The notes beneath the pieces are model-generated. The model was not told the DNA's origin. It made no database searches and saw only the letters and a list, made by a program, of their open reading frames with translations. DNA of 63,763 bases, the filler included, from Reticulomyxa filosa (lineage: Eukaryota; Protista; Foraminifera): NCBI GenBank assembly GCA_000512085.1. It is 26 parts of 26 records of this genome, joined end to end, with 100 filler letters (N's around TTAATTAATTAA, not from the genome) between each part and the next. Parts side by side here need not be neighbours in the genome. Positions count along the whole stretch, not along the records: positions 41,319 to 53,225 come from ASPP01020079.1; 25 more parts are not named here. One strand, 5' to 3'. Made by a program: the position numbers and the translations under genes. Positions 39,101 to 53,473 of this stretch are shown piece after piece; positions within the stretch are counted from its first letter, which is position 1, and each line of letters opens with the position of its first letter.

Positions 39101-41692
39101 TATAGTTTGGTCCTGCTGAAGATAAATATATTGATATTTTTTAAACTAAAGCTTTGATATTAAGTCGAAAGAAGCAAACGCAACGATCCAATCGCTGAAA
39201 ACGAACAATAAAGTCACATTAGTCTAGTGATACCAACTAGCGTAAACGAAGTAAAATCTGTAACTTGAAATCATGTTATATCTGGTCAAATAACCAACTG
39301 ACGTTGGATATGATAACGCTGGAAATGACGCATGTGATGCTGGTAACAGTTGAACAGTTGTTGAATAAATTTTGAAAACAACATTTTTGTGCAAGAGTTT
39401 TTTTTAAATTTTTAAAATAGTTGAAATTTTACTTAAAAAACTTTCACTCCAAATTATGTAAATATCGCAAAATTTTGAAAATTTCTTTAAATGGACTAAT
39501 TGGAAATCGTGCATTAAATATTATTATTCGCAACTTGATGTTATGCAACATTAGTGAAAATTCTTGACTAGATCTTATGTTTTCTTTTATCAATAACAAA
39601 AAATAATTGTTAGAACTTTGTTGAAAAAATCTAACGAATATGGTACATTCATGGACATATTGGATGTGTTGTTAGTTTGATCCAAATGTGTTTACGCCAT
39701 CATCTTCATCATCATGTTCACAATCAAATCGATAAACACTGCAAATGTTATCATTTTTTGTTTGTAATGACTCTGTTTTATTAATTGAGACAAGAAAAAA
39801 GTAGTTTACACCCCTTTTTTAAAAAAAAAAAAAAATGCAACTAACACTTTTTAAAGCTCACAAGAAATGAGCCTTTTTTTTTTTTATATNNNNNNNNNNN
39901 NNNNNNNNNNNNNNNNNNNNNNNNNNNNNNNNNTTAATTAATTAANNNNNNNNNNNNNNNNNNNNNNNNNNNNNNNNNNNNNNNNNNNNAAATCAATCCA
40001 TTTACATATTTTCGACTTTCTTTTAAAATATTACTTGGAATATAGGTTGCGTATATGACATGACAATAATCAGCTCACCATTTTCAAATTGTTCGATTTT
40101 CGTTCAATATATCATGCACCACATTACATGATATGGACCTTCAATTTATTTTTTTTTCAAATTATACGCCATTTAAAGCGCAATACTATGATCCATATCC
40201 AATTCATGCCATCACTAAAATCAATATTTGTTTAATGACGGGCACACGTGTTGTAGTGTGGCTCCATGATTTGTATATTGAATTTTCATCAGCAACAATT
40301 TGACAATGATTTGCCACTTTGTTCACCTTCATGTCCGCAACCATCGATACCTGCTGCAACTGTTGCTGTTGCCATTATTGCTGGGAACTCACTGCAGCAC
40401 CAATGGCAATATACACAGCCACAGCTATTCATTTTCATTTGTACACTTTTAAATATCTATTCAAAATTTCAAGCAACACATATAAAAATATAACCAATAC
40501 ACGTATAAAGATGTTATGTTGAACATATATAAAATACTTTTCCAAGCAATGGACCCAATCACGATCATAACGTCAGGTGACAGGAAAGAGGAACATGCGA
40601 AACAGCAGCAAATTCTTGTGACGTGATAAATTGAATTTTTGCTGTTCGAGTGAGCGCTTCGATTTCAATAATAATACCATTATCAAGCATTCCGTTATTT
40701 GGAATCATTGAAAGGTCCGTCCCTTAGAACTACCATTTCAAGTGGTAGTCTTGTCAACAGAAGACTATTCCACTTTTCGCATCCGAGCGATTCGATTTTT
40801 TTGGTATCCGAACAATTCGTTCATATCCACAGTGGCAAGGTCTTTGAGAGGAAGAGGGACACCAAATCAAAGCCGCTGAAATATAGCGACGTCACCCAAA
40901 TATTTGCTCACACAATATCAGTCCAATATCTCGAAACAATTGACTAATGAGTAGAATATAATATGGACTGCGTTTCGTCGTCATCATCATTTTAATCATC
41001 ATTGGATATTGTCACACCAGTCAAGCAGCTTCCATTGGGAGTCTCGGAATACTCTTTTTTCTTTTCATCCACGATATTTTCCGACTACCAAATCCATCTG
41101 CTATTGTCATCGCCCTTGTGATAAGGGATACATCTTGGCCTTATCAAATGGACGTATGGTCATGGACGCAAGTATTCGAATAACGACCATTATCCTGATG
41201 ATCCAATGAGGAATGTCANNNNNNNNNNNNNNNNNNNNNNNNNNNNNNNNNNNNNNNNNNNNTTAATTAATTAANNNNNNNNNNNNNNNNNNNNNNNNNN
41301 NNNNNNNNNNNNNNNNNNTTTTATTTTGTTAAAAAAAAAGAAGTGATCTTACTCAAACAAAAAATGTTTCTATCAAAACATTGATTCAAAAAAAGGAAAA
41401 AAAAAGATTATACGAATTGAAAACTTCGAATTTCATTGTTTATTATTTTGATAATAAAAAAGGTGTGACAAAAAAGATATTATATATTTTTATTAAAAAA
41501 ATTATCAAAAAGAATATCAAAATTAATTGTATGATTTGTTTTGAATGATAACAATAATAACAAATAGCATTTGTTATTAATAACTTATAAAAAAGAAGTG
41601 CATATAAAGTTCAAATATATAATGCGACAATGTGAAATAGTATATGAATATGGTTTAAAAAAACCAAATAATCCAATTATCTTACTATCTCT

Positions 41693-41875
41693 ACATACCT
41701 GGTTCGAACTCATAGGTGATCAAAATGGCTTATGGGTAGTAACTTGTTGGTCTTTCAGTTTATAAAATGCACTCACACCACATTGATTGACTAACGTAGT
41801 TATTTTGCTATATCCCGAGTGGAGTAGCAGTCGACGCAATATTTGGCTATGGTGGATGCGTTAATCGCACCACCT
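41693..41875 (+). ncRNA. U1: U1 spliceosomal snRNA, variant 5' end
   Basis: Elements appear in canonical U1 order: 5' ACATACCTGG; SL1 (ACTCATAGGT/GCTTATGGGT) with loop GATCAAAATG; SL2 (TAACTTGTTGGTC/GACTAACGTAGTTA) with an ATGCAC loop; SL3 (TTGCTAT.TCC/GGAGTAGCAG); helix-H TCGAC; Sm-like AATATTTGG; SL4 (GGTGGATGCG/CGCACCACC). Confidence 0.88.
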
Positions 41876-42741
41876 CCCTATTTTCTATTTTTATTGATGG
41901 TGAAAATTTAATTTGTACTAATAATGATCACTCAAATATTTGTATTACCAGAAAAAAAAGATGCATGCTTTAACTCTTTTATTTTTCTAGGCATATTATT
42001 TCAATAAAAGTAAATTTAAAAAACAAATCGTAATTTGTTTTATAGTTCACTGGATTTTGCAATTAATTCCTTCATTAAATTTTTGTATTTTTTGTTTGAG
42101 TCATCTTTTTAAGTTGATTTATACGTTAAAAATTGTCCCACAAATGTTATTGTAATGTCTTCCACATAAAAAAAGGTGTCCGTAGTTACATTTTCATTTC
42201 CTGAAAAATAGCAAAATCGAATCTTTGTTTTTGGAACAAGCCTAATGTTTAGATTAAAGAGGTTCGAAAGGCTTTTAAAAAGATTCCAACAAGTCGTTTT
42301 TTTTATTTTCATGAATAGATTAATCAATTGCGAACATATTTTAATATTAACATTTTAAAAACAAAAACAAAAAACAGTGCACACGAAAAACAAATAATAA
42401 ATTATGCGTCAATGCAACCTCAAAAACATTCTGGAACGGAAACAATCACCAATTGTAGTCTCCGTAGAAACAAATAAAAATAATGGAAAAAAAATGACTA
42501 TACAAAAAGAAAAATGAAAGAAAGGGGTAAATAAGTAATAATAAAATAATTCGAAAGTGAGTATTTTTTATTTTTTGGATAGCTGTATGTTGATAAATAA
42601 TGATCACCTCACATTCTTCGATCGATATGTTAGGTGGGATCTGTGAAGGGAGGATTATGAACGAGAAGAGTGAGAAAACAAAAGATAAATATAAATAAGA
42701 GACATACACACATACATTATTAAGTATTTGTAAAGAAAAGA

Positions 42742-44272
42742 TTAATAGATTCGTATTTCTAATTTAGAAAAATTACGACATCGGACAGCGGAACGTTTTT
42801 GTGATTTATACTTGTGTGTAATGAATCGATAGGTATTGGTTTCCAAAGAGTCAATATTCAAAATATGATGGAGTCGCATCATAATAGGTTGAAGTTGGTG
42901 CCACGGATACTTCATTTCGAAATACGTGGTCATAAGTGTATCCCATTCTTGGATGGAGGCGCATACACGCATGATGCAGCAAACATAGCAAATGATCGCA
43001 CTGGAAAACCATCGACGGCGGAAAATGCAATGCAATGCTCGAGTCGGCACAACACATTTCCGCTAAAAACATACACAAATGAGTCATGAGCAGATCGTTA
43101 TTGCGATTGCTCATTCGATACTTGGCAATATGAAGATATCGCTCCAAAAAGGACCAATGTGTTACCAAACATACGTTAAAGTCTAAACACAACAAGATAT
43201 GCTCTTCCATTTGAATCAAGTTTTCGCGAGTGAATCGGAACAAATGCTCTGTTTCTTGTTTTTTGTTTTTGGTTTTGTTGATGTTGGCATTGCAATTCGC
43301 CGCGTCATCAAAAGCGTTACTATCATAGTCATCGTTATCGTTAAGGCGAACATTGGCCGCCCAAAACAAATGTTTGTATTCCAAAGTAAACGTTTCTTGA
43401 TACTTGCTGGCAATCCACAAACAACATAACACAAATAATGGGAAACAGTTGGCATTGATTTGTTTGAAACAGGCATCTTTCCGACGATTCGTTTTTGACT
43501 GCTTTTTTTTGTGTTGACACGTAGCACTAGCACTAGCACTAGTACCTTGATCAAAGGATTGTTCTGACGTCCATGTCGGTGTCAATGTTTGCAAGTATTT
43601 GTCCATGATAGCAATGCCAAGGAACAAGGACGCATCTGACAAACGCAGCAAGTGATGTAGTTGCACCATCCAATCTACTCCCCGTCGACGCAGTTCATTC
43701 GTGATTCCCAAACACCTCCATTGTTCACACTCCTCTAATCCGTTTCGAAGTAGTTTGCAACGAGCCATTTCCTTGCTGTAATGATGCGACATTATGTCCT
43801 CCACGTACGATGCGCAATTCAAATCCGTCTCCGATTGCACATTGTCCCAAGGCTTTAATTCCGGTTGTATACGTGTTGTGTTCTTATCTTCTCTTTCTGG
43901 TAGTGTTGCACTTGTGTTTTCCTCATGTCCTTCCTCTCCTTTGTAAGTTTGTTGGAGATCATCCATTTCTTCGTCTTCATCCATTGTGTCGCCCTCATTC
44001 ATGAGTGACTTGTCGCTTCTTTGCATCACCTCTTCCCATGTGCACGTGTTCATATCCATGCCCAAGGGCGATGACGACGACAAGTCGTCTGCCACTGACT
44101 TTTCCTCTTTTTCACTTGATGGTGATGGCGGAGAGAATGTGGGACTGGGAGCAATTAACACACTTTTGCTTATCATTGTGTTTCCGTATCCCCTCCCTTC
44201 GCTCTCGTTGGTGTGTGCTCCGTTCAAAGAGGATTTTTGAGCTTCATACTGGCAATGAGAATAAGTTGCCAT
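42742..44272 (-). CDS. Divergent A/B-type cyclin (1-nt frameshift near 43005)
   Basis: 'ASYVEDIMSH', 'LRRRGVDWMVQLHHLLRLSDASLFLGIAIMDKYL', 'CLWIASKYQE', 'LIQMEEHILLCLDFNV', 'FPPSMV|SSAIICY'. Confidence 0.88.
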
Positions 44273-44703
44273 CCGTTCCGTTTGTGATGACCACAAGTTT
44301 AACAAAATATGAAAAAAGAAAAGAATTGTGTTGACTTGTGAGGAACACTCAAACTAAAAACTTTTCATTACTAAACGAAAATTGAAACGATATATACAGT
44401 TGAGGCACAAACAAAATCATTTTACTTTCAATTATAGTAACTAATTTTACCTTCAACTCCATGTCTCTGGCTATTTTATTCATAGTTTTGGGTTTAATTA
44501 TGTCACTAGCGATCTACTAGCTTTTGCATAAAACAAATAAGACAAATCATTAGTTTAAAATTTCAAGAAAGGACAGAAAACTGAAAGCAGTAACTTTACA
44601 AATTTAGTAGGTGAGTAACCTCACCTACAAAAAGCGAAGTGGGTCGGTGTATGGATTGTTTTTCGTTTTTTATTTTTGTTTACATAGTTGAACGAAAATA
44701 ATA

Positions 44704-45967
44704 ATGGTATCATGGCTGAGTATATCCTATGAAGCGGTCTGTTTGATTTCATGGTGCCTAGAAATGGTAATATTAGGACTCTTTGTGCACCACTGGAGAA
44801 CGCAACCCAATCAACAGCCGAAACCTGGACATGAAAAAGTGACACGAATCTTCCCTCTACTCACTTGTTTATGTATCGTGGCATATTCAGGTATATCAAT
44901 ACTGGGAGCGTTGGAAATGCGAATTGGAAAAACAGGGTGTAGGATTCGATCGCAAGCGAATGCAGTGTTTGTAATAAGCGCTCGTTTTTCCTTGTATAAC
45001 ATACTCATTTTACGCTTACAAGCCATATTCGAAGGCACCGGATTTAGATACTCGGCACGTTTTCTGACATTTTTGAAGCTTAGCGTGTTGGTATACTCGC
45101 TCACCTTTTATGCCTTAAGTCCGTGGCTCGCGAAAGGTAGATCCACCAAATGGAGTGAATGTACATTCACAACAAACATTTGGATCATTACCGCGTTCGC
45201 TGTAACCGACATAATTATCAACATTGTTTGCTTGGCATTATTTGTAAGGTAACTACGATTTTCTTTTTTCTTTTTTTTTTTTTTTTTATGTGCATACGTA
45301 TACGCATATATATATCATGTACATATATGTACATACATGCATCTATAGTATGTACTATATAGCTGTGTATATTATGTCCTTGTACCATACAAGTTTGCAT
45401 GTTGGATTAGTATGGGAACAGTGGGGGGGGGGAAAAAGAGCCACACAAGGATAGAGGCTTTTATTTTTTTTTTTTTTTTTTTGAAAAAAAAAAAAGACCG
45501 CTGTTGCAAGTGTGGATCGAGGCCAGTGCGCAAGAATTGTTCGACGTAACGGTCAAGTACACAGTGTTGACAGCAACTGCGTCATTGACAGAATTGGTGT
45601 CAACAGCGTTATTTGCTACTAGTTGGCCTATTTATCATGTGAACAGAATTGACGAGGTTATTCATTGCTATTTACTCTTCTTTCACACTATGTACTCTCC
45701 CTCCTTCTTTTTGATCGCCACTTTTTTTGATCGCCTCTTTTTTTTTTTTTTTTAGGAATTAATTGCGTTTGTCTGTTGCTGATGACCAACACATACACGA
45801 GATGGTACGAATTCCTGTGTGCTGGTTGCATAAACTGCTGCAGTCTTCCTGTTAAGGCCATGGGCAGAATGACTATTACGATCAATGAGGCTGAAATGGA
45901 ACGTAAACAATCCAAGCTGAGTTTTGAAGCGGTGGGAGAATCCTCCCCAGGCACTCCTAATAAATGA
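44704..45967 (+). CDS. Seven-transmembrane (GPCR-like) protein, three exons
   Basis: Exon 1 has five hydrophobic helices with 'C.I......ARFSLY.ILILRLQAIF'. Two more helices are in the exons at about 45497-45656 and 45756-45967. Confidence 0.7.
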
Positions 45968-46208
45968 TATCTAATCTAGATATTTCTGGAAAACTCATTT
46001 GTAGATTTTTTTAAAAAAAGAGGATGCCAATCAATATTTGAAAATGTTTTGTATGTTGATTTGCCTTGAATGAACTGAAGAAAGAAATAATTTTCCAGTA
46101 ATCGACTTTTTTTTAACAATTGCTTTGTGTAAATACACTTTAAAAATACTTTTTGATATTGTTGAGCCATGTGGAAGCATATTATCTAAATATTTGGCTT
46201 TCTTTATA

Positions 46209-47275
46209 CGGTAAAATGCAAAGTAAAGTTGATACATAAAACGGCACCTTATAGAGATCATTGATTTTATGAATGAAAAAACAACATACAGACAAAATTT
46301 TTTAAAAATCTACAAATAGTGTAGTTTTTAAATATCATTTGGTTTTTTATTACATATTTCCTAATTGTTTAAAAAATTTGAATATTTTATTGATTTTTGA
46401 AAATTTTCGAGAAAAAGTTGACTATCGTGACTATGTCATAACCATGAAACTTGCCAACTTTTTTTAAAGAATTTTTAGAAAATTCTCAATGCGTAGATAT
46501 TTGTAAAAAAAAGATTAGTCTTCTACGTTGAGTAGTTTTTGATAAAGCTCAATTTTTTGTTAACAAAATATTTTTTTTTTGAGAATTTTCAAAGTTTGTA
46601 AAATGTGAAAGAATTATTGTTTTGACTACTGTTTGCTTTGTATTTACTTATAATTGATTTTTTTGCTTTTTTTTGTCCAATGCTAAACAAGTCAAACTAA
46701 TTCAAAAGCATAAGAATTAAAATTTTTTTTTGTGCTAAGATTGTCTTTAATGAAAATTATCATTTGGTTAAATCACTTTTTGCATTTTATACTGCTTGTA
46801 TTTTCTCTGACATTGAATTTGTTAAGTTTGTCTATATTTCTTTGTCATTTTTTTTCATTCTAATTCAAATTGTTTACTGCTTTCTTCTTTTGATCAGAAT
46901 GATCAATTTTTGAATATTTTCGTTTTCACTATAAACCAAAGATTTTCGATATGTTTTGCAACTTTGCGCAAACTCCAGCACTGACTCAACAGTTCAACAC
47001 CAAGTCTTTTGCTAAAATTCTCAATACTTTAGCAATTTTCAAAAAAATGATTAAAAAACTCAAATATCGAACTACATTGAGCTAAAAAAAAAGGATAAAA
47101 TATTGAAATAATTATTAAAGATTTAATAAAAAACTAAATTTAAAATGATATTTAAAAAGTACACGATTTGTATTATTAAAAAAAAATTAGGTCTGAATGT
47201 TGTTTTTTCATTCATAAAATCAATAATCTCTATAAGGTGCCGTTTTATGTGTCAACTTTACTTTGCATTCTACTG
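46209..47275. mobile_element. Non-autonomous Tc1/mariner-like DNA transposon (MITE-like) with long TIRs and a TA target-site duplication
   Basis: The left end TA|cggtaaaatgcaaagtaaagttgatacataaaacggcaccttatagagatcattgattttatgaatgaaaaaacaaca nearly matches the reverse complement of the right end, TA|cagtagaatgcaaagtaaagttgacacataaaacggcaccttatagagattattgattttatgaatgaaaaaacaaca. There is no transposase ORF inside. Confidence 0.88.
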
Positions 47276-47611
47276 TACAACGTGTAAAAGTTGCTTTAGT
47301 TCAAAAATTAATCTCATCTGTTTGAAGTGTTTGAAGAATTTTACTATTTTTCATCACAAATTTAGTGTTCTGTATATGCTTTTGGCATCTTTTCTTTCGT
47401 CAAGCTAACTTTAAACCTAATTATTTTCTTATCATGAAAACAATTAGTTGAAAATTAAAGAAACTATTTTAAAGAACTGGGACATTATCAAGTCAATTTT
47501 ACGTGCCTTATTACATAGAACACGTGTGAAAAGTAATAAAACAAGTTGTAGAGAAGGTCCTGCCAGGAAACAAACCCTTTCGGAACTTAGAAATCTTTTT
47601 TCATTAAAAAG

Positions 47612-48245
47612 ATGACGCAATTAACACAAAAAAAACCTACAAGTACAAAATCAGAACCACAATATGTAGAATTGGCTCCTCAAGTAGAAGCAATAGTGAT
47701 AGCAGACGCAAACGGAAACCGTTTGTGCGCAAAATACTATTGCAAACTGGAAGATTTGAAGGAAAAGAATCTCAAACAAAATTTGAAACTGGAATTTTAA
47801 ATAAAATTAATCGATCTCAAGCAAAAAATGAAACAGATGTAATGTTATACAATGATCATTTAGTGTTATTTAAGTCATTTCAAACAGTAAGACTGTTATT
47901 AATTGCTTCACCAACAGCAAATGAATTAATAATGGATGAAGTATTAAAAGGATTAGAAGATGCATTAAATGCATTATTGAGGTAAGATTGTTAATTTTTT
48001 ACTGCTTTAATAAATAAATACACATTATAATATACATATATAGAAATAATGTTGACAGTCGCTCAATTATTGATAACATGGATTATATCTTACTTGCTAT
48101 TGATGAAATATGTGATGATGGGATCATCTTTGAAACTGCTGGGGATGCCGTTACCAGTCGCGTACAAATGCGGGAAATTTCACCATTATCTCAAGACACT
48201 CTTTCTGATGCTTTTCAAAAAGCGAGAACCCAATGGCTTAGATGA
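47612..48245 (+). CDS. COPZ: Coatomer subunit zeta (two exons; 1-nt frameshift near 47740)
   Basis: 'VEAIVIADANGNRLCAKYY', 'KFETGILNK', 'ANELIMDEVLKGLEDAL', intron 47982-48043, then 'IIDNMDYILLAIDEICDDGIIFET'. Confidence 0.93.
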
Positions 48246-49194
48246 TTTTTTTTTAATAAAAAAAAATAAACATACTTTTTAAAATGTCTCTTCACTTTTC
48301 CATTTTTTTTTGTTTATTGGAGAGAGAAAAAGAAAGAGAGGAGACGCCACATCATTTGCTACCACGTCAAAAAATTATGTCTTTTTCCTTCACATTTTAA
48401 TTATCCAACAACATTTCCTTACATATTTCCATTTACTCTCTTTACTTACACTCTTTTTCTTTTTTATCAAATTTTTGGTTCAATTAATATCTGTTTGTAC
48501 TTCTTGCCATCTTGTTTTTTTCTTTGTATGTCTCGAAATTGAAAAGGTACCTTATACAATTCTCTAAAAATGTAATACACGATTTAATTTAACGTAAAGA
48601 ATATCTCAAAGTTACTACTTTAGTTGTGGTATTTCAGATCTGCATGTTTTTGCTTAAAACTGCCCATTTGTAATAATTGATAAAACAATAATTTGAGAAT
48701 TAGAGTAATACCAGAAAGTGGCAATTAGTTGACCACTAAATAAATTGATCAAAGTATTTTGTAACAAAACTTGAAAATGTTTAGAATTCCAAAAATTCAC
48801 TTCATCAAAATGTGCCTTTAGACACGATGGTTGGATTTGAGGGGAAAAAATTCCCCTTTGGAAAAATTTTAAAAGAAAACAATCAACGCATAAAAAACAA
48901 AGACAGTTCTCTCGTGTTCCTCAGTCCACTAAATCGTGTGTTAGACGAAAAGGGGAACAGGAGGGACAGGGAAAAAGGGGTTAAAAAAAATAAAAACAAA
49001 CTCAACCAAGAAAAAATGCATACAAAAACAATGTGACTAAAGGCCAAAAAAAAATGATGAAACACAAAAAACAAACCAAAAACGAACCTTTTGCTTCACA
49101 GAAACCATAGCTGAATATGTCGTCCAACCACAACAGAGGTTAGTTCAGTTTGACAAACGCATTTGGTTTTTTTTTTTATTGTTGTTGATGTGCA

Positions 49195-50153
49195 TTATTT
49201 AAATCAATCACCAACTTTGATTCAATTTCACTGCCTTGGATGAACTATTATTTCCAACACAACAAAAAAGGGTGCTCACTTCAAAAAAAAAGGGGGGAAA
49301 CAAAAAAAATTTTTAAAACACAAAAAAAAAAAAAAAATCAAAACTTTGGTAAATTCTTCTTCAGATAATTTCCCGTCCTTGTCCTCATCTGCTTGAAAGA
49401 TGGTACGATCCACCAATTGTTGTAGTTGTGTGTCGTTAAGATTATCACCAACCATTATTTTCAGAATTCGGAACAAATCGCCATTGCTGATGTATCCATC
49501 GTTATTTACGTCATAAATTTTGAATGTAACTGTCATCACCACCCATCGGAATATATAAAATATATGTATGTATATGTAAATAACATATGTGTATATATTA
49601 TATACATATATATATTTTTTGTGTATGACACATAAAATACGTGAAACATAAAAAGGTTGTGTCATTGTTTTGAAAACTCTTTCCTTCCTCCTCCTCTGTT
49701 ACAACAATGATACAAGACAAAAAGTATACAACACTAACATGACATTTTGGCCTTTTGGTTAGGTTCATCATTTGAACAAAATATTCCAAGAGCCCCAACG
49801 AACTCTGAAAAGTCAATCTTATCATTGTTATCGTTGTCAAAAATCTCTAATACTCTTGAGACCAATGGGTTTTGTTGTAATGCTTCGATTTGTAAAAACT
49901 CATCTTTTGACAAAAAGCCGTCATTGTTTTTGTCCAAACGTTTGAAATTTCTGAACAATCGCTGTAATTCTTGGGTCGTGACTGTATTGTTTTTTTGTTT
50001 ATTTTGGATTTTATTCGTTTATTTTCCCAGTTTTAGTTTTTTTCTCACAAAAAAAAATTCCAAGATAGTTTTTTTGTTTTTAGTAGTGATACATTTTGCT
50101 GAGAATTTATCTGTGCTCAAATCTTTTGCTTTCAGATCCTGAATATTACCCAT
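49195..50153 (-). CDS. CNB1: Calcineurin B regulatory subunit (four exons)
   Basis: MG start, then '[46 protein letters not shown]' and '[58 protein letters not shown]'. Confidence 0.95.
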
Positions 50154-50887
50154 TCTTCTAAATAGTTAGTAGACACGCTTCAACAACAAATTACTGGAAA
50201 TGGAAAAACTTAGAAACAGGCCAAACCTAAAAAAAACTAAACTTTTTTTTGGACAACTTTCACACTGTTAAAACAATAAAGAAGTCTTGCGTTTTTTTTT
50301 ACTTGTATACATACACGAAAAAATCAATTACATCAAAATTATAATCATTTTTGTCAAATTGGTGTGCTGTGATCTATTTTAACGGCTCTGATACATTGCA
50401 TCGTGATTGCTGACGATTTTTTTAGAAATCGCTTGTGGAACAATGTGACGACAATGATGCTGTTTTTATTGCTTTTTGCTGAGTTTTACTTCTTTTTAAT
50501 TGTTTTGGTGACAATGCACTCCTACAATAACATAGTGTGTTAATCACAAAAAATGTGTTAACTTGGTAAAACCATGCTTAAATATTATTCCAATGAAGAG
50601 AAAATTGCGTGAAGACTAACTTTTGTTTCCCTTGGATTATTGTTTACTTTTAAAACATTTTTACTTGGTTGTTTTGCAACCGTAAGAAAAGGTATGCAAA
50701 AAAGCTTAGTAAGGCTCGATTTTTTATAACCATTATTTTTCTTCTCTTGTAATTGCTCATTTTTTTGCAATTTCTAATTACAGTAAAAAAAAACCACTAA
50801 AATTTTTTTACTTGGAAGGGTAAAAAAAAAAGTGAACGAAATCTAGTTATAATATACAACACAATATCAGCGTGTGTTCAACTAATC

Positions 50888-52308
50888 ATGAAACATGTCC
50901 ACGGAGTTTCATTTTTGATATCTTTGGCACTATTTACCATCTCGTTTTGGTTCTGGATCGATATGACGAGTACTCCTCGTGTAACTCAAGCAAGAGTATT
51001 ACCCGAAGCCGAACCAAGGCCAAAAAAAACGATTCCAATGGTATTTGATAACTTTGGAATGGCAACAGGCTATTTTCATACACTAAACTGTTTTTTTATT
51101 CGCTATCCCTAGTGAAGTGGAACTATTCATGGACAACAACCTACGACACATTGATTGAAATACCTGGACAATTACGGAAAGACAAAAACCCAAATCATTA
51201 CCCAATTCGTTATTTCTTTGACCTATTTGAGACTCCCAATTCGCACAAGCAACATCACTACCTGAAAGTAAGCGACGATTTAAGTTCTTTAGAAGACTCT
51301 CGACTCCGATATTCAGATTGTGACCCTCCGTATGGAAACGCGGACTTTATGCACGACATCCGTCTGTTCTTTGACCGACTCTTAGATCTAAATCGGAGCC
51401 ATCGACCAGTTTGGAGCCTGGATGTGAAAAGGCCTCCCAATTGGTACCATTACTATCCCACTTCGTTGTCCATCTTGTTGATCAACCGCTCCAATGTGTT
51501 TAAACGCGGCCTCGTTAATATCAATTCATTATACGTCGCGCTAAAAAGTTTTTTTGAAAGCGACGTTCCGCAACTGTCACCAACGTTTAAAAAATATGCT
51601 TCTCAAAATGCCAGTTTCAATAAAAATGGGTTTGCATCTGGGAGTCAGGAAAGCAAGTTGTTTCACTTGTTGTCAAAATTTGAGGGAAAAAAGCAGTCAC
51701 TCCAAACTTTGGAGACGGACTCCAAAACTCGGCCTCCTTCTCTCTCTTTGGAGGAAAAGTACGAAAATGTGTTTTGGATGTCACTTAAACTATTTCGTTA
51801 CCAAGTGCAACTCATTTCTCCTGAATACCCTTCCATGAATATTACCACAGCATTGCAGCACTTTGTGGATGCCAGCATTGTCATTGCTGTGCATGGCGCT
51901 GCAGAACAAAACTTGTTCATTAGCAATCCTGGCACTTTAGTCCTTGAAATTTGTCCTCCTTATATGCATTGCAAATGCTATAAAGATAAAAAATCGAGCT
52001 ATTGTCCTGGCTTTTATAGCTCACGCATGAGACATGCACATTTTTTTGCGTACGCTCAAGAAACGGAGTCTTTCAATTGCACTTTGTTTTGTCAAAAAAT
52101 GCCCAACACTATTAATGCAAGGAAAATCGTCAGAAATGGGCCCACTCAAGGGATTGACGTCAACTCCGATGACATCATCTATTTGCTTCTTAAAATGCTC
52201 GCTTTTCGAAACTGGAATTTCTATCAAGACATTTTTACACGAAAACATGCCACTGATGACTTGGAGGCTTTGCTTAACATTTCTTTACTCATGCAATATG
52301 CAAAGTAA
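50888..52308 (+). CDS. GT61/DUF563-like type II membrane glycosyltransferase (frameshift in the T-run near 51090)
   Basis: N-terminal TM anchor. 'ALQHFVDASIVIAVHGAAEQNLFISNPGTLVLEICP' matches the GT61 HGAG..N motif. Confidence 0.8.
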
Positions 52309-52807
52309 AGGCGTAAAAAAAACTTTTTAAAATCTCTCTTCCAAATCTTTTCATCTTTCGTATATTAAATGGGTCCAAAATTGTACGCTCTTTTGTTTTA
52401 TTGCTTGCTTCTTTTTTTTTAAAACTTGTTGTAAGATATCAAGCATTTTCCAAAACAAAAAAAATGGTAACTCCAAAACTTGGAGCTTTTTACTCGCCTT
52501 TCAAAATTTATTGACCAAAATATTTTTGAAAAAACGACAGAACTTGTTTTGGCTTTGTTCTTTATTAAATTACTTTTCTTTGTGATATAACTAACACAAA
52601 CTGTGCAAAAAACACAGTTTACGTTGATCTCAAATAATAATTTTTAAATTACATAAATATTAGTTTGCTTTTGTCTGTAAGTTGAGAAAATCACTACCAG
52701 AACTTTTCTGTTTAACCGATGTCAACCCCCCTTGCCTTTTCTAGAAAAACTTCTGTGAGCATTCATTCTTCATATCAAAATATATTAAATCGTAGAAAGA
52801 AGTAAAA

Positions 52808-53137
52808 ATGACAAGTGACAATAAGAAAACAAATCATAACGAAAAGATTGAACAGCTGGATTCTCCCACAGACGAGAAAACTGGAGGGAAGGATTTGCGC
52901 CGACAATATAAGAATGGAACATCGCATACAGTGAGTTATGAAAAGAAGAGGTCATTCAAGAACAAGTTTATATTATTTTATTACAAAACAATGGAAGAGA
53001 TTGCTCACAACATCCACAACTTGTTCGGTGGCAAAACGGTTCTGGGACAAATATCTTGGGACAATTTTCCGGACGGGTTCCCAAATCTGAAAATTAAAGG
53101 CGCATATGACATCCGATGGTCGGAAGTGATTTTTCTG
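52808..53137 (+). CDS. PRS: Ribose-phosphate pyrophosphokinase, class II (PRS3/4-like), first exon
   Basis: 'ILFYYKTMEEIA...LGQISWDNFPDGFPNLKI...DIRWSEVIFL' matches the class II pattern I.W..F.DGFPNL.I...IR...V.FL. Confidence 0.8.
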
Positions 53138-53473
53138 GTAAAAAAAAAAAAGCGAAAGGGGGGATTTTTTTTTTGATAAAAAAGAAAGCTATTACATATA
53201 TACGTATATATGCAATAATCCTTTTNNNNNNNNNNNNNNNNNNNNNNNNNNNNNNNNNNNNNNNNNNNNTTAATTAATTAANNNNNNNNNNNNNNNNNNN
53301 NNNNNNNNNNNNNNNNNNNNNNNNNAAGTAGAATTTGAAAATTTTTCAAAAAATTTTCGAAAAGGTGACGGGGATATAGGATTTTCGATTTTGATAATAT
53401 CAGCTCAAACTTTTTTCATTTCATCATGTTCATCATGATTATTTTTATGATGGTTCCTTTTGGAAATGCACAA

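Follow-up and report, generated by a model that had tools for sequence, protein, structure and literature searches.

The DNA described here is the entire NCBI contig ASPP01020079.1 of the Reticulomyxa filosa assembly GCA_000512085.1 (11.9 kb, one of 50,809 contigs), which occupies positions 41319-53225 of the window, the whole stretch of 63,763 nucleotides along which all positions are counted. When the contig was scanned with 4227 Rfam families (E ≤ 1), the sole non-trivial match was that of the U1 snRNA family RF00003, which aligned over its full length (model positions 1-166 of 166) to positions 41691-41875 of the plus strand with a score of 37.3 bits and an E value, specific to that search, of 1.4e-6. 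In this alignment, the guide, SL1, SL3, the Sm site and SL4 have high posterior probabilities, and SL2 has an insertion of 50 nt. Its score is lower than the gathering score of the family (69.5 bits) and also lower than the threshold of 55.7 bits employed for U1 in the eukaryote-wide screen of Davila Lopez et al. (2008), and the gene is absent from the annotation probably because of its score being under the Rfam cut-off. We regard the assignment of 41691-41875 to the U1 family as secure, its sub-threshold score notwithstanding. The gene and its parts are as follows:

41656-41665, plus strand: A-rich, TATA-like run TTTAAAAAAA, at -37 to -28 relative to 41693
41691-41875, plus strand: U1 snRNA gene, from the extent of the RF00003 alignment and the MFE fold
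41693-41701, plus strand: 5' splice-site guide ACAUACCUG, from direct reading and the RF00003 alignment
41700-41707 with 41831-41838, plus strand: helix H, which closes the four-way junction (pair list)
41708-41737, plus strand: SL1, with a U1-70K-type loop at 41717-41726 (RF00003 alignment, pair list)
41738-41804, plus strand: SL2, unusually long, 15 + 5 bp (MFE fold, pair list)
41805-41830, plus strand: SL3, 10 bp, loop CGAGU (RF00003 alignment, pair list)
41838-41846, plus strand: Sm-site-like AAUAUUUGG, single-stranded in the MFE fold between helix H and SL4
41851-41874, plus strand: SL4, 9 bp, G+C-rich and free of G-U pairs, loop UUAAU (RF00003 alignment, pair list)

Positions 41693-41702 of the window read ACATACCTGG, with the variant A at 41695. 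The 5' end of the U1, cuACAUACCUGG, differs from AUACUUACCUGG solely by this A, which corresponds to position 5 of human U1. The guide ACAUACCUG is identical at eight of its nine positions to the near-universal ACUUACCUG, which is complementary to CAG/GUAAGU, and the match line of the RF00003 alignment over the guide is blank solely at the U to A base. The first seven bases of the guide are unpaired in the MFE fold. In the established register between U1 and the 5' splice site, C8 pairs with G+1, A7 with U+2, U6 with A+3, U5 with A+4, C4 with G+5 and A3 with U+6; hence, position 5 of human U1 faces position +4 of the intron, a base whose identity U6 reads as well. The RNA likely starts at the A of 41693, and if transcription does begin there the variant A is its third nucleotide; the numbering of the Giardia U1 also begins with the A of ACUUAC (Giardia paper).

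The unconstrained MFE fold of 41693-41875 (ViennaRNA) is the U1 four-way junction, made up of helix H, SL1, SL2 and SL3, followed by the 3' SL4. Its energy is -56.8 kcal/mol, as compared with -42.4 ± 4.1 kcal/mol for shuffled sequences (z = -3.5), and none of the 200 shuffles folded as well. The fold comprises 57 standard pairs (22 GC, 26 AU and 9 GU) and one single-base bulge, which lies in SL2. The U1-70K binding loop of canonical SL1 is AUCACGAA; the loop observed here, GAUCAAAAUG, agrees with the Rfam consensus GAUCAaGAAG at 8 of 10 positions and retains GAUCA..G. In Giardia, the U1 is without the U1-70K loop motif altogether and is still accepted as a U1 (Giardia paper). The SL2 loop carries a U1A-type sequence, AAUGCACUC, at 41766-41774, which contains UGCACUC, the eukaryotic U1A-site consensus as quoted in the Giardia paper, and its heptamer AAUGCAC shows one change relative to AUUGCAC. 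The Sm-site-like AAUAUUUGG is aligned to the RF00003 consensus AAUUUgUGG; the AUUUGG within it fits the Sm site RAU3-6GR, and a single A breaks a longer U-run. Overall, the R. filosa copy has in common with canonical U1 (RF00003) the 5' guide, helix H, SL1 to SL3, the Sm site, SL4 and loops of the U1-70K and U1A types, whereas it differs in its guide (ACAUACCUG instead of ACUUACCUG), in two bases of the SL1 loop, in an SL2 that is about 50 nt longer and bears AAUGCAC, and in the sequence of its Sm site. A sequence-only reading of this DNA had described a complete U1 fold (SL1-SL4, helix H and Sm site) whose guide is altered by one base and whose U1-70K and U1A loops are also changed. The RF00003 alignment and the MFE fold bear out the fold, direct reading bears out the A at 41695, and the loops are indeed altered (GATCAAAATG at 41717-41726 and AATGCAC at 41766-41772). 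Its further claim, that the variant guide favours donors of the GUAUGU type, agrees with the pairing register, in which the A would form a Watson-Crick pair with +4 U.

The DNA that flanks the U1 gene is very AT-rich, with 23-28% G+C. The TATA-like run TTTAAAAAAA is a possible promoter element, although such a run is weak evidence in a flank of 23% G+C. The core of the canonical guide, CTTAC, occurs at 41681-41685 on the plus strand, 8 nt upstream of the presumed start of U1, in the context ATCTTACTATCTCT/ACATACCTGG. This occurrence is probably due to chance, as another CTTAC is present at 41348, and it would be relevant only if transcription began farther upstream. A Rfam scan, a pattern search and a tRNA search found no second U1, other snRNA or tRNA in the 11.9-kb contig, where 41693-41701 is the sole occurrence of ACWTACCTG. 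Metagenomes were also scanned for a pattern in which either guide (ACWTACCTGG) precedes the R. filosa-type loop GATCAAAATGG by 13-17 nt. Two loci matched this pattern. Neither of them had a Rfam match at E ≤ 0.1 or a U1 fold downstream of the pattern, and both were rejected as chance matches in DNA that, by eye, looks protein-coding. A search among 5.8 billion proteins (E < 1e-5) for relatives of the neighbouring cyclin and GT61-like proteins returned only the proteins themselves and, because these neighbour genes are without detectable relatives, no syntenic contig from another species was obtained; a search for contigs that encode them yielded the present one alone.

The donor sites used by the host were examined in two conserved genes of the same contig, which were rebuilt exon by exon from exon homology and reading frame; the NCBI gene models of the contig are unreliable, and annotated introns were left out as evidence. 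The calcineurin B gene (49176-50153, minus strand) has four exons, with its ATG at 50153 and a stop codon that ends at 49176, and introns of 111, 209 and 100 nt. Its exon pieces, searched singly, match calcineurin B structures with E values of 1e-18 to 1e-28. The NCBI model of this gene (129 aa, 49176-49665) begins at an ATG inside intron 2 and is without the first two exons. The zeta-COP (coatomer zeta) gene lies at 47612-48245 on the plus strand, and the alignment of its downstream exon to COPZ1 begins at residue 108. The upstream exon alone gave no PDB match and is assigned to this gene on account of the downstream exon match and the reading frame. A one-base frame shift occurs in this gene within 47737-47764, around a GGAAAAG run, and probably stems from a homopolymer indel of the draft assembly. 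In this case, the NCBI model (128 aa) stops at a TAA inside the GTAAGA donor and is without the last exon, 48044-48245. The donors verified by homology are:

50087-50092, minus strand: AAU/GUAUCA, +4 U, calcineurin B intron 1 (frame restored, with an F codon split across the junction)
49733-49738, minus strand: CAU/GUUAGU, +4 A, calcineurin B intron 2 (exon homology and frame)
49339-49344, minus strand: AAA/GUUUUG, +4 U, calcineurin B intron 3 (exon homology and frame)
47982-47987, plus strand: GAG/GUAAGA, +4 A, zeta-COP gene (downstream exon homology)

Three of these donors, GTATCA at 50092, GTTTTG at 49344 and GTAAGA at 47982, had been placed correctly in the sequence-only reading and are confirmed by exon homology, whereas the GTCATG that it had placed at 49743 is misplaced: the calcineurin B frame closes only with donors at 50092, 49738 and 49344, the second of which is GTTAGT (+4 A). 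The four verified donors, a sample far too small for a logo, are thus two with +4 U and two with +4 A. Additional candidates are GUAAAA at 53138, which the sequence-only reading had also listed, GUAAGG or GUAACU at 45244/45249 and, from the annotation, GUUUUU (51090) and GUAAAG (52306); when these unverified sites are included, three donors have +4 U versus five with +4 A. In terms of pair counts, the variant guide gains one pair over the canonical guide on two of the verified donors and loses one on the other two, and for the two clean GUAAG donors, that at 47982 and the candidate one at 45244, the canonical guide would be the better pairing partner. The donors of R. filosa are degenerate beyond GU, and in this small sample they show no preference that matches the variant guide.

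We consider it probable that 41691-41875 is a functional U1 gene of R. filosa whose guide would prefer donors with +4 U. From its sequence, family match, fold and motifs, all of which are direct observations, we infer that the RNA is transcribed, assembled into a snRNP and used in splicing. The RNA would assemble as an ordinary U1, with U1-70K bound to SL1, U1A to SL2, the Sm ring on AAUAUUUGG and the 5' end free for pairing with 5' splice sites. Opposite intron position +4 it would have A where the canonical guide has U or pseudouridine (ACAUAC vs ACUUAC), so that with GU(A/U)U.. donors the particle would gain one Watson-Crick pair and with GUAAG. donors it would lose one. The combination of a primary sequence far from the consensus (37 bits, with a 50-nt expansion of SL2) and the retention of all helices suggests long evolution under structural constraint. 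This is an indirect argument for function, since intact helices in a strongly drifted sequence are to be expected from selection on structure and not from random decay. Two observations call for caution. The U1-70K loop, otherwise highly conserved, is changed at two positions and the U1A heptamer at one, and the U-run of the Sm site is interrupted by an A; a drifting variant copy would show motif changes of this kind too. Additionally, +4 U is not favoured among the donors of this contig.

These motif changes bear on the alternative that the locus is a non-functional or decaying copy, i.e., a pseudogene, in which neutral drift has produced both the A at 41695 and the altered loops. We regard this as rather unlikely. 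The sub-threshold Rfam score, the departure of three protein-binding motifs (the loops of SL1 and SL2, and the Sm site) from the consensus and the presence of a single dispersed copy between protein-coding genes would all be consistent with it. However, none of the six helices is broken, the fold has 57 standard pairs and was matched by no shuffle, and drift that was able to alter conserved loops should have broken stems too; the locus also lacks the poly(A) tail, truncation or target-site duplication seen in a retro-pseudogene. It is less probable again that the A at 41695 is an error of base-calling or assembly and that the true gene is a canonical ACUUACCUG U1. Errors do occur in this draft assembly, as exemplified by the frame shift of the zeta-COP gene in 47737-47764, but the error observed there is a homopolymer indel and not a substitution, position 41695 lies within the non-repetitive ACATACC, and the same change is reported to occur naturally in Physarum.

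A further alternative concerns how many U1 genes this organism has. The gene could belong to a U1 multigene family that has canonical ACUUAC copies too, either with two or more guide classes or with the present gene as a low-abundance copy comparable to the human vU1s. This corresponds to the repertoire of U1 variants with different guides that the sequence-only reading had suggested. It is a sub-case of a functional gene and its probability is contained within that of the functional reading; we hold it to be possible, though on the doubtful side. The donors on this contig comprise both +4 U and +4 A types, 52% of human vU1 genes are changed in the region that pairs with the 5' splice site, and Physarum, the only other organism reported to have ACAUAC, is described as having standard as well as modified U1 variants. 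Against this, only a single U1 is present in the 11.9-kb piece, human vU1s account for under 0.2% of U1, and it is doubtful whether they have a role in splicing. A more specific proposal, which we put forward only tentatively and with slightly less confidence than the existence of a multigene family, is that R. filosa, and perhaps foraminifera generally, might possess two U1 snRNP classes, one with ACAUAC for +4 U donors and another with ACUUAC for +4 A donors, which would jointly read degenerate 5' splice sites. If true, R. filosa would provide a rhizarian counterpart of the situation in Physarum, the identical guide change having arisen independently.

Few RNA sequences of eukaryotes are as conserved as the U1 guide ACUUAC. 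To our knowledge, natural compensating changes in it are known only from a few amoebozoans, viz. Physarum, Entamoeba and Mastigamoeba. The original description of the ACAUAC guide in Physarum is probably that of Myslinski et al. (1989, NAR 17:1019). According to Roy & Bowser (bioRxiv 10.1101/2022.06.08.495308), who refer to an earlier report, Physarum polycephalum has a U1 with ACAUAC, matching its commonest donor GUAUGU, and the same authors credit it with both standard and modified U1 variants. The two organisms thus share one and the same substitution, by which ACUUAC becomes ACAUAC and can again pair with +4 U; they differ in that GUAUGU is the commonest donor in Physarum, whereas the few donors seen in R. 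filosa are degenerate. Due to the fact that Physarum is an amoebozoan and R. filosa a rhizarian, the guide change in the latter would be independent of that in the former. In Entamoeba, the U1 guide ACAAAC matches GUUUGU donors, and in Mastigamoeba the guide is ACGUAC and the donor GUGCGC (Roy & Bowser, bioRxiv 10.1101/2022.06.08.495308). The U1 RNAs of these two genera have four stem-loops, U1-70K and U1A sites and an Sm site (bioRxiv 10.1101/2022.06.08.495308), and they share with the R. filosa copy a natural guide change that faces intron positions +3/+4 in an otherwise recognisable U1. However, their guides match a near-universal atypical donor and are conserved across species, whereas the R. 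filosa guide is seen in one species and the few donors examined show no matching preference.

Guides that depart from the canonical form are also found in the human vU1 genes, 52% of which differ in the pairing region and whose transcripts are rare (<0.2% of U1 in HeLa), and in the diplonemid Sulcionema specki, the second U1 of which carries a C-run guide. Although these RNAs resemble the R. filosa copy in that the region pairing with the 5' splice site is not canonical, they are minor species beside an abundant canonical U1, whereas in R. filosa one copy was seen, within the contig. The converse situation is provided by 69 Saccharomycotina species and by Giardia and Trichomonas, all of which keep ACUUAC despite +4 U donors (bioRxiv 10.1101/2022.06.08.495308); many of their donors are GUAUGU and a U-U mismatch is tolerated. 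In contrast, the R. filosa copy has the compensating A, which is seen in none of the 69 yeast species. The R. filosa U1 is a natural guide variant that belongs to a small known class, comes from a new supergroup and has a guide identical to that of Physarum. The sequence-only reading had considered it to be a candidate for an undescribed system, which is overstated, as the identical ACAUAC guide has been reported for Physarum and other guide variants are published.

A rhizarian U1 with ACAUAC would be an independent occurrence of this guide in a different supergroup, and in a host whose donors are degenerate rather than uniform. It bears on the question of whether intron loss and homogenised splice sites are required for snRNAs and introns to co-evolve, and also on whether several U1 guides can share the work of splicing. 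A U1 snRNA of Reticulomyxa, or of any other foraminifer, was not mentioned in any paper found by our literature search; this would be the first foraminiferal U1 to be described, and it is one that standard Rfam thresholds miss. If the copy at 41691-41875 is minor or dead, none of these implications hold.

The remainder of the contig contains several other features. The cyclin gene (42851-44305, minus strand) consists of a single exon with Cyclin_N and Cyclin_C domains, and the N-terminal half of its product is long, acidic and of low complexity. The GT61-like protein RFI_23015 [Reticulomyxa filosa] (511 aa, plus strand) has a model that requires a 23-nt "intron" at 51090-51112, GTTTTTTTATTCGCTATCCCTAG, and a low-complexity C-terminal exon (52306-52447) that lies past a natural stop at 52308; both the short intron and the C-terminal exon look like gene-model artefacts or frameshift patches. 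At the edge of the contig, an ORF at 52808-53137 (plus strand) ends at the possible donor CTG/GTAAAA (53138). Its motif SWDNFPDGFPNL presumably resembles those of class II PRPP synthases, but its identification as the N-terminus of a phosphoribosyl-pyrophosphate-synthase-like protein was rejected, since Pfam and PDB searches lent it no support. Two ORFs, 44704-45252 and 45504-45755, belong to an uncharacterised multi-pass membrane protein; the apparent intron between them contains an AT/CA-rich microsatellite hairpin (45253-45500), and its candidate donors, GTAAGG at 45244 and GTAACT at 45249, each have +4 A. Sub-threshold Rfam matches to mir-297, mir-466, mir-3149 and similar families at 45281-45350 and 49564-49634 were rejected as miRNAs, these being AT/CA-rich low-complexity hairpins far below the gathering scores. 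Lastly, a pair of inverted repeats of about 137 nt and about 90% identity (46204-46340 and 47143-47280) encloses about 800 bp of AT-rich DNA in which no clear ORF was found, and may represent a foldback element, a terminal-inverted-repeat element or an inverted duplication.
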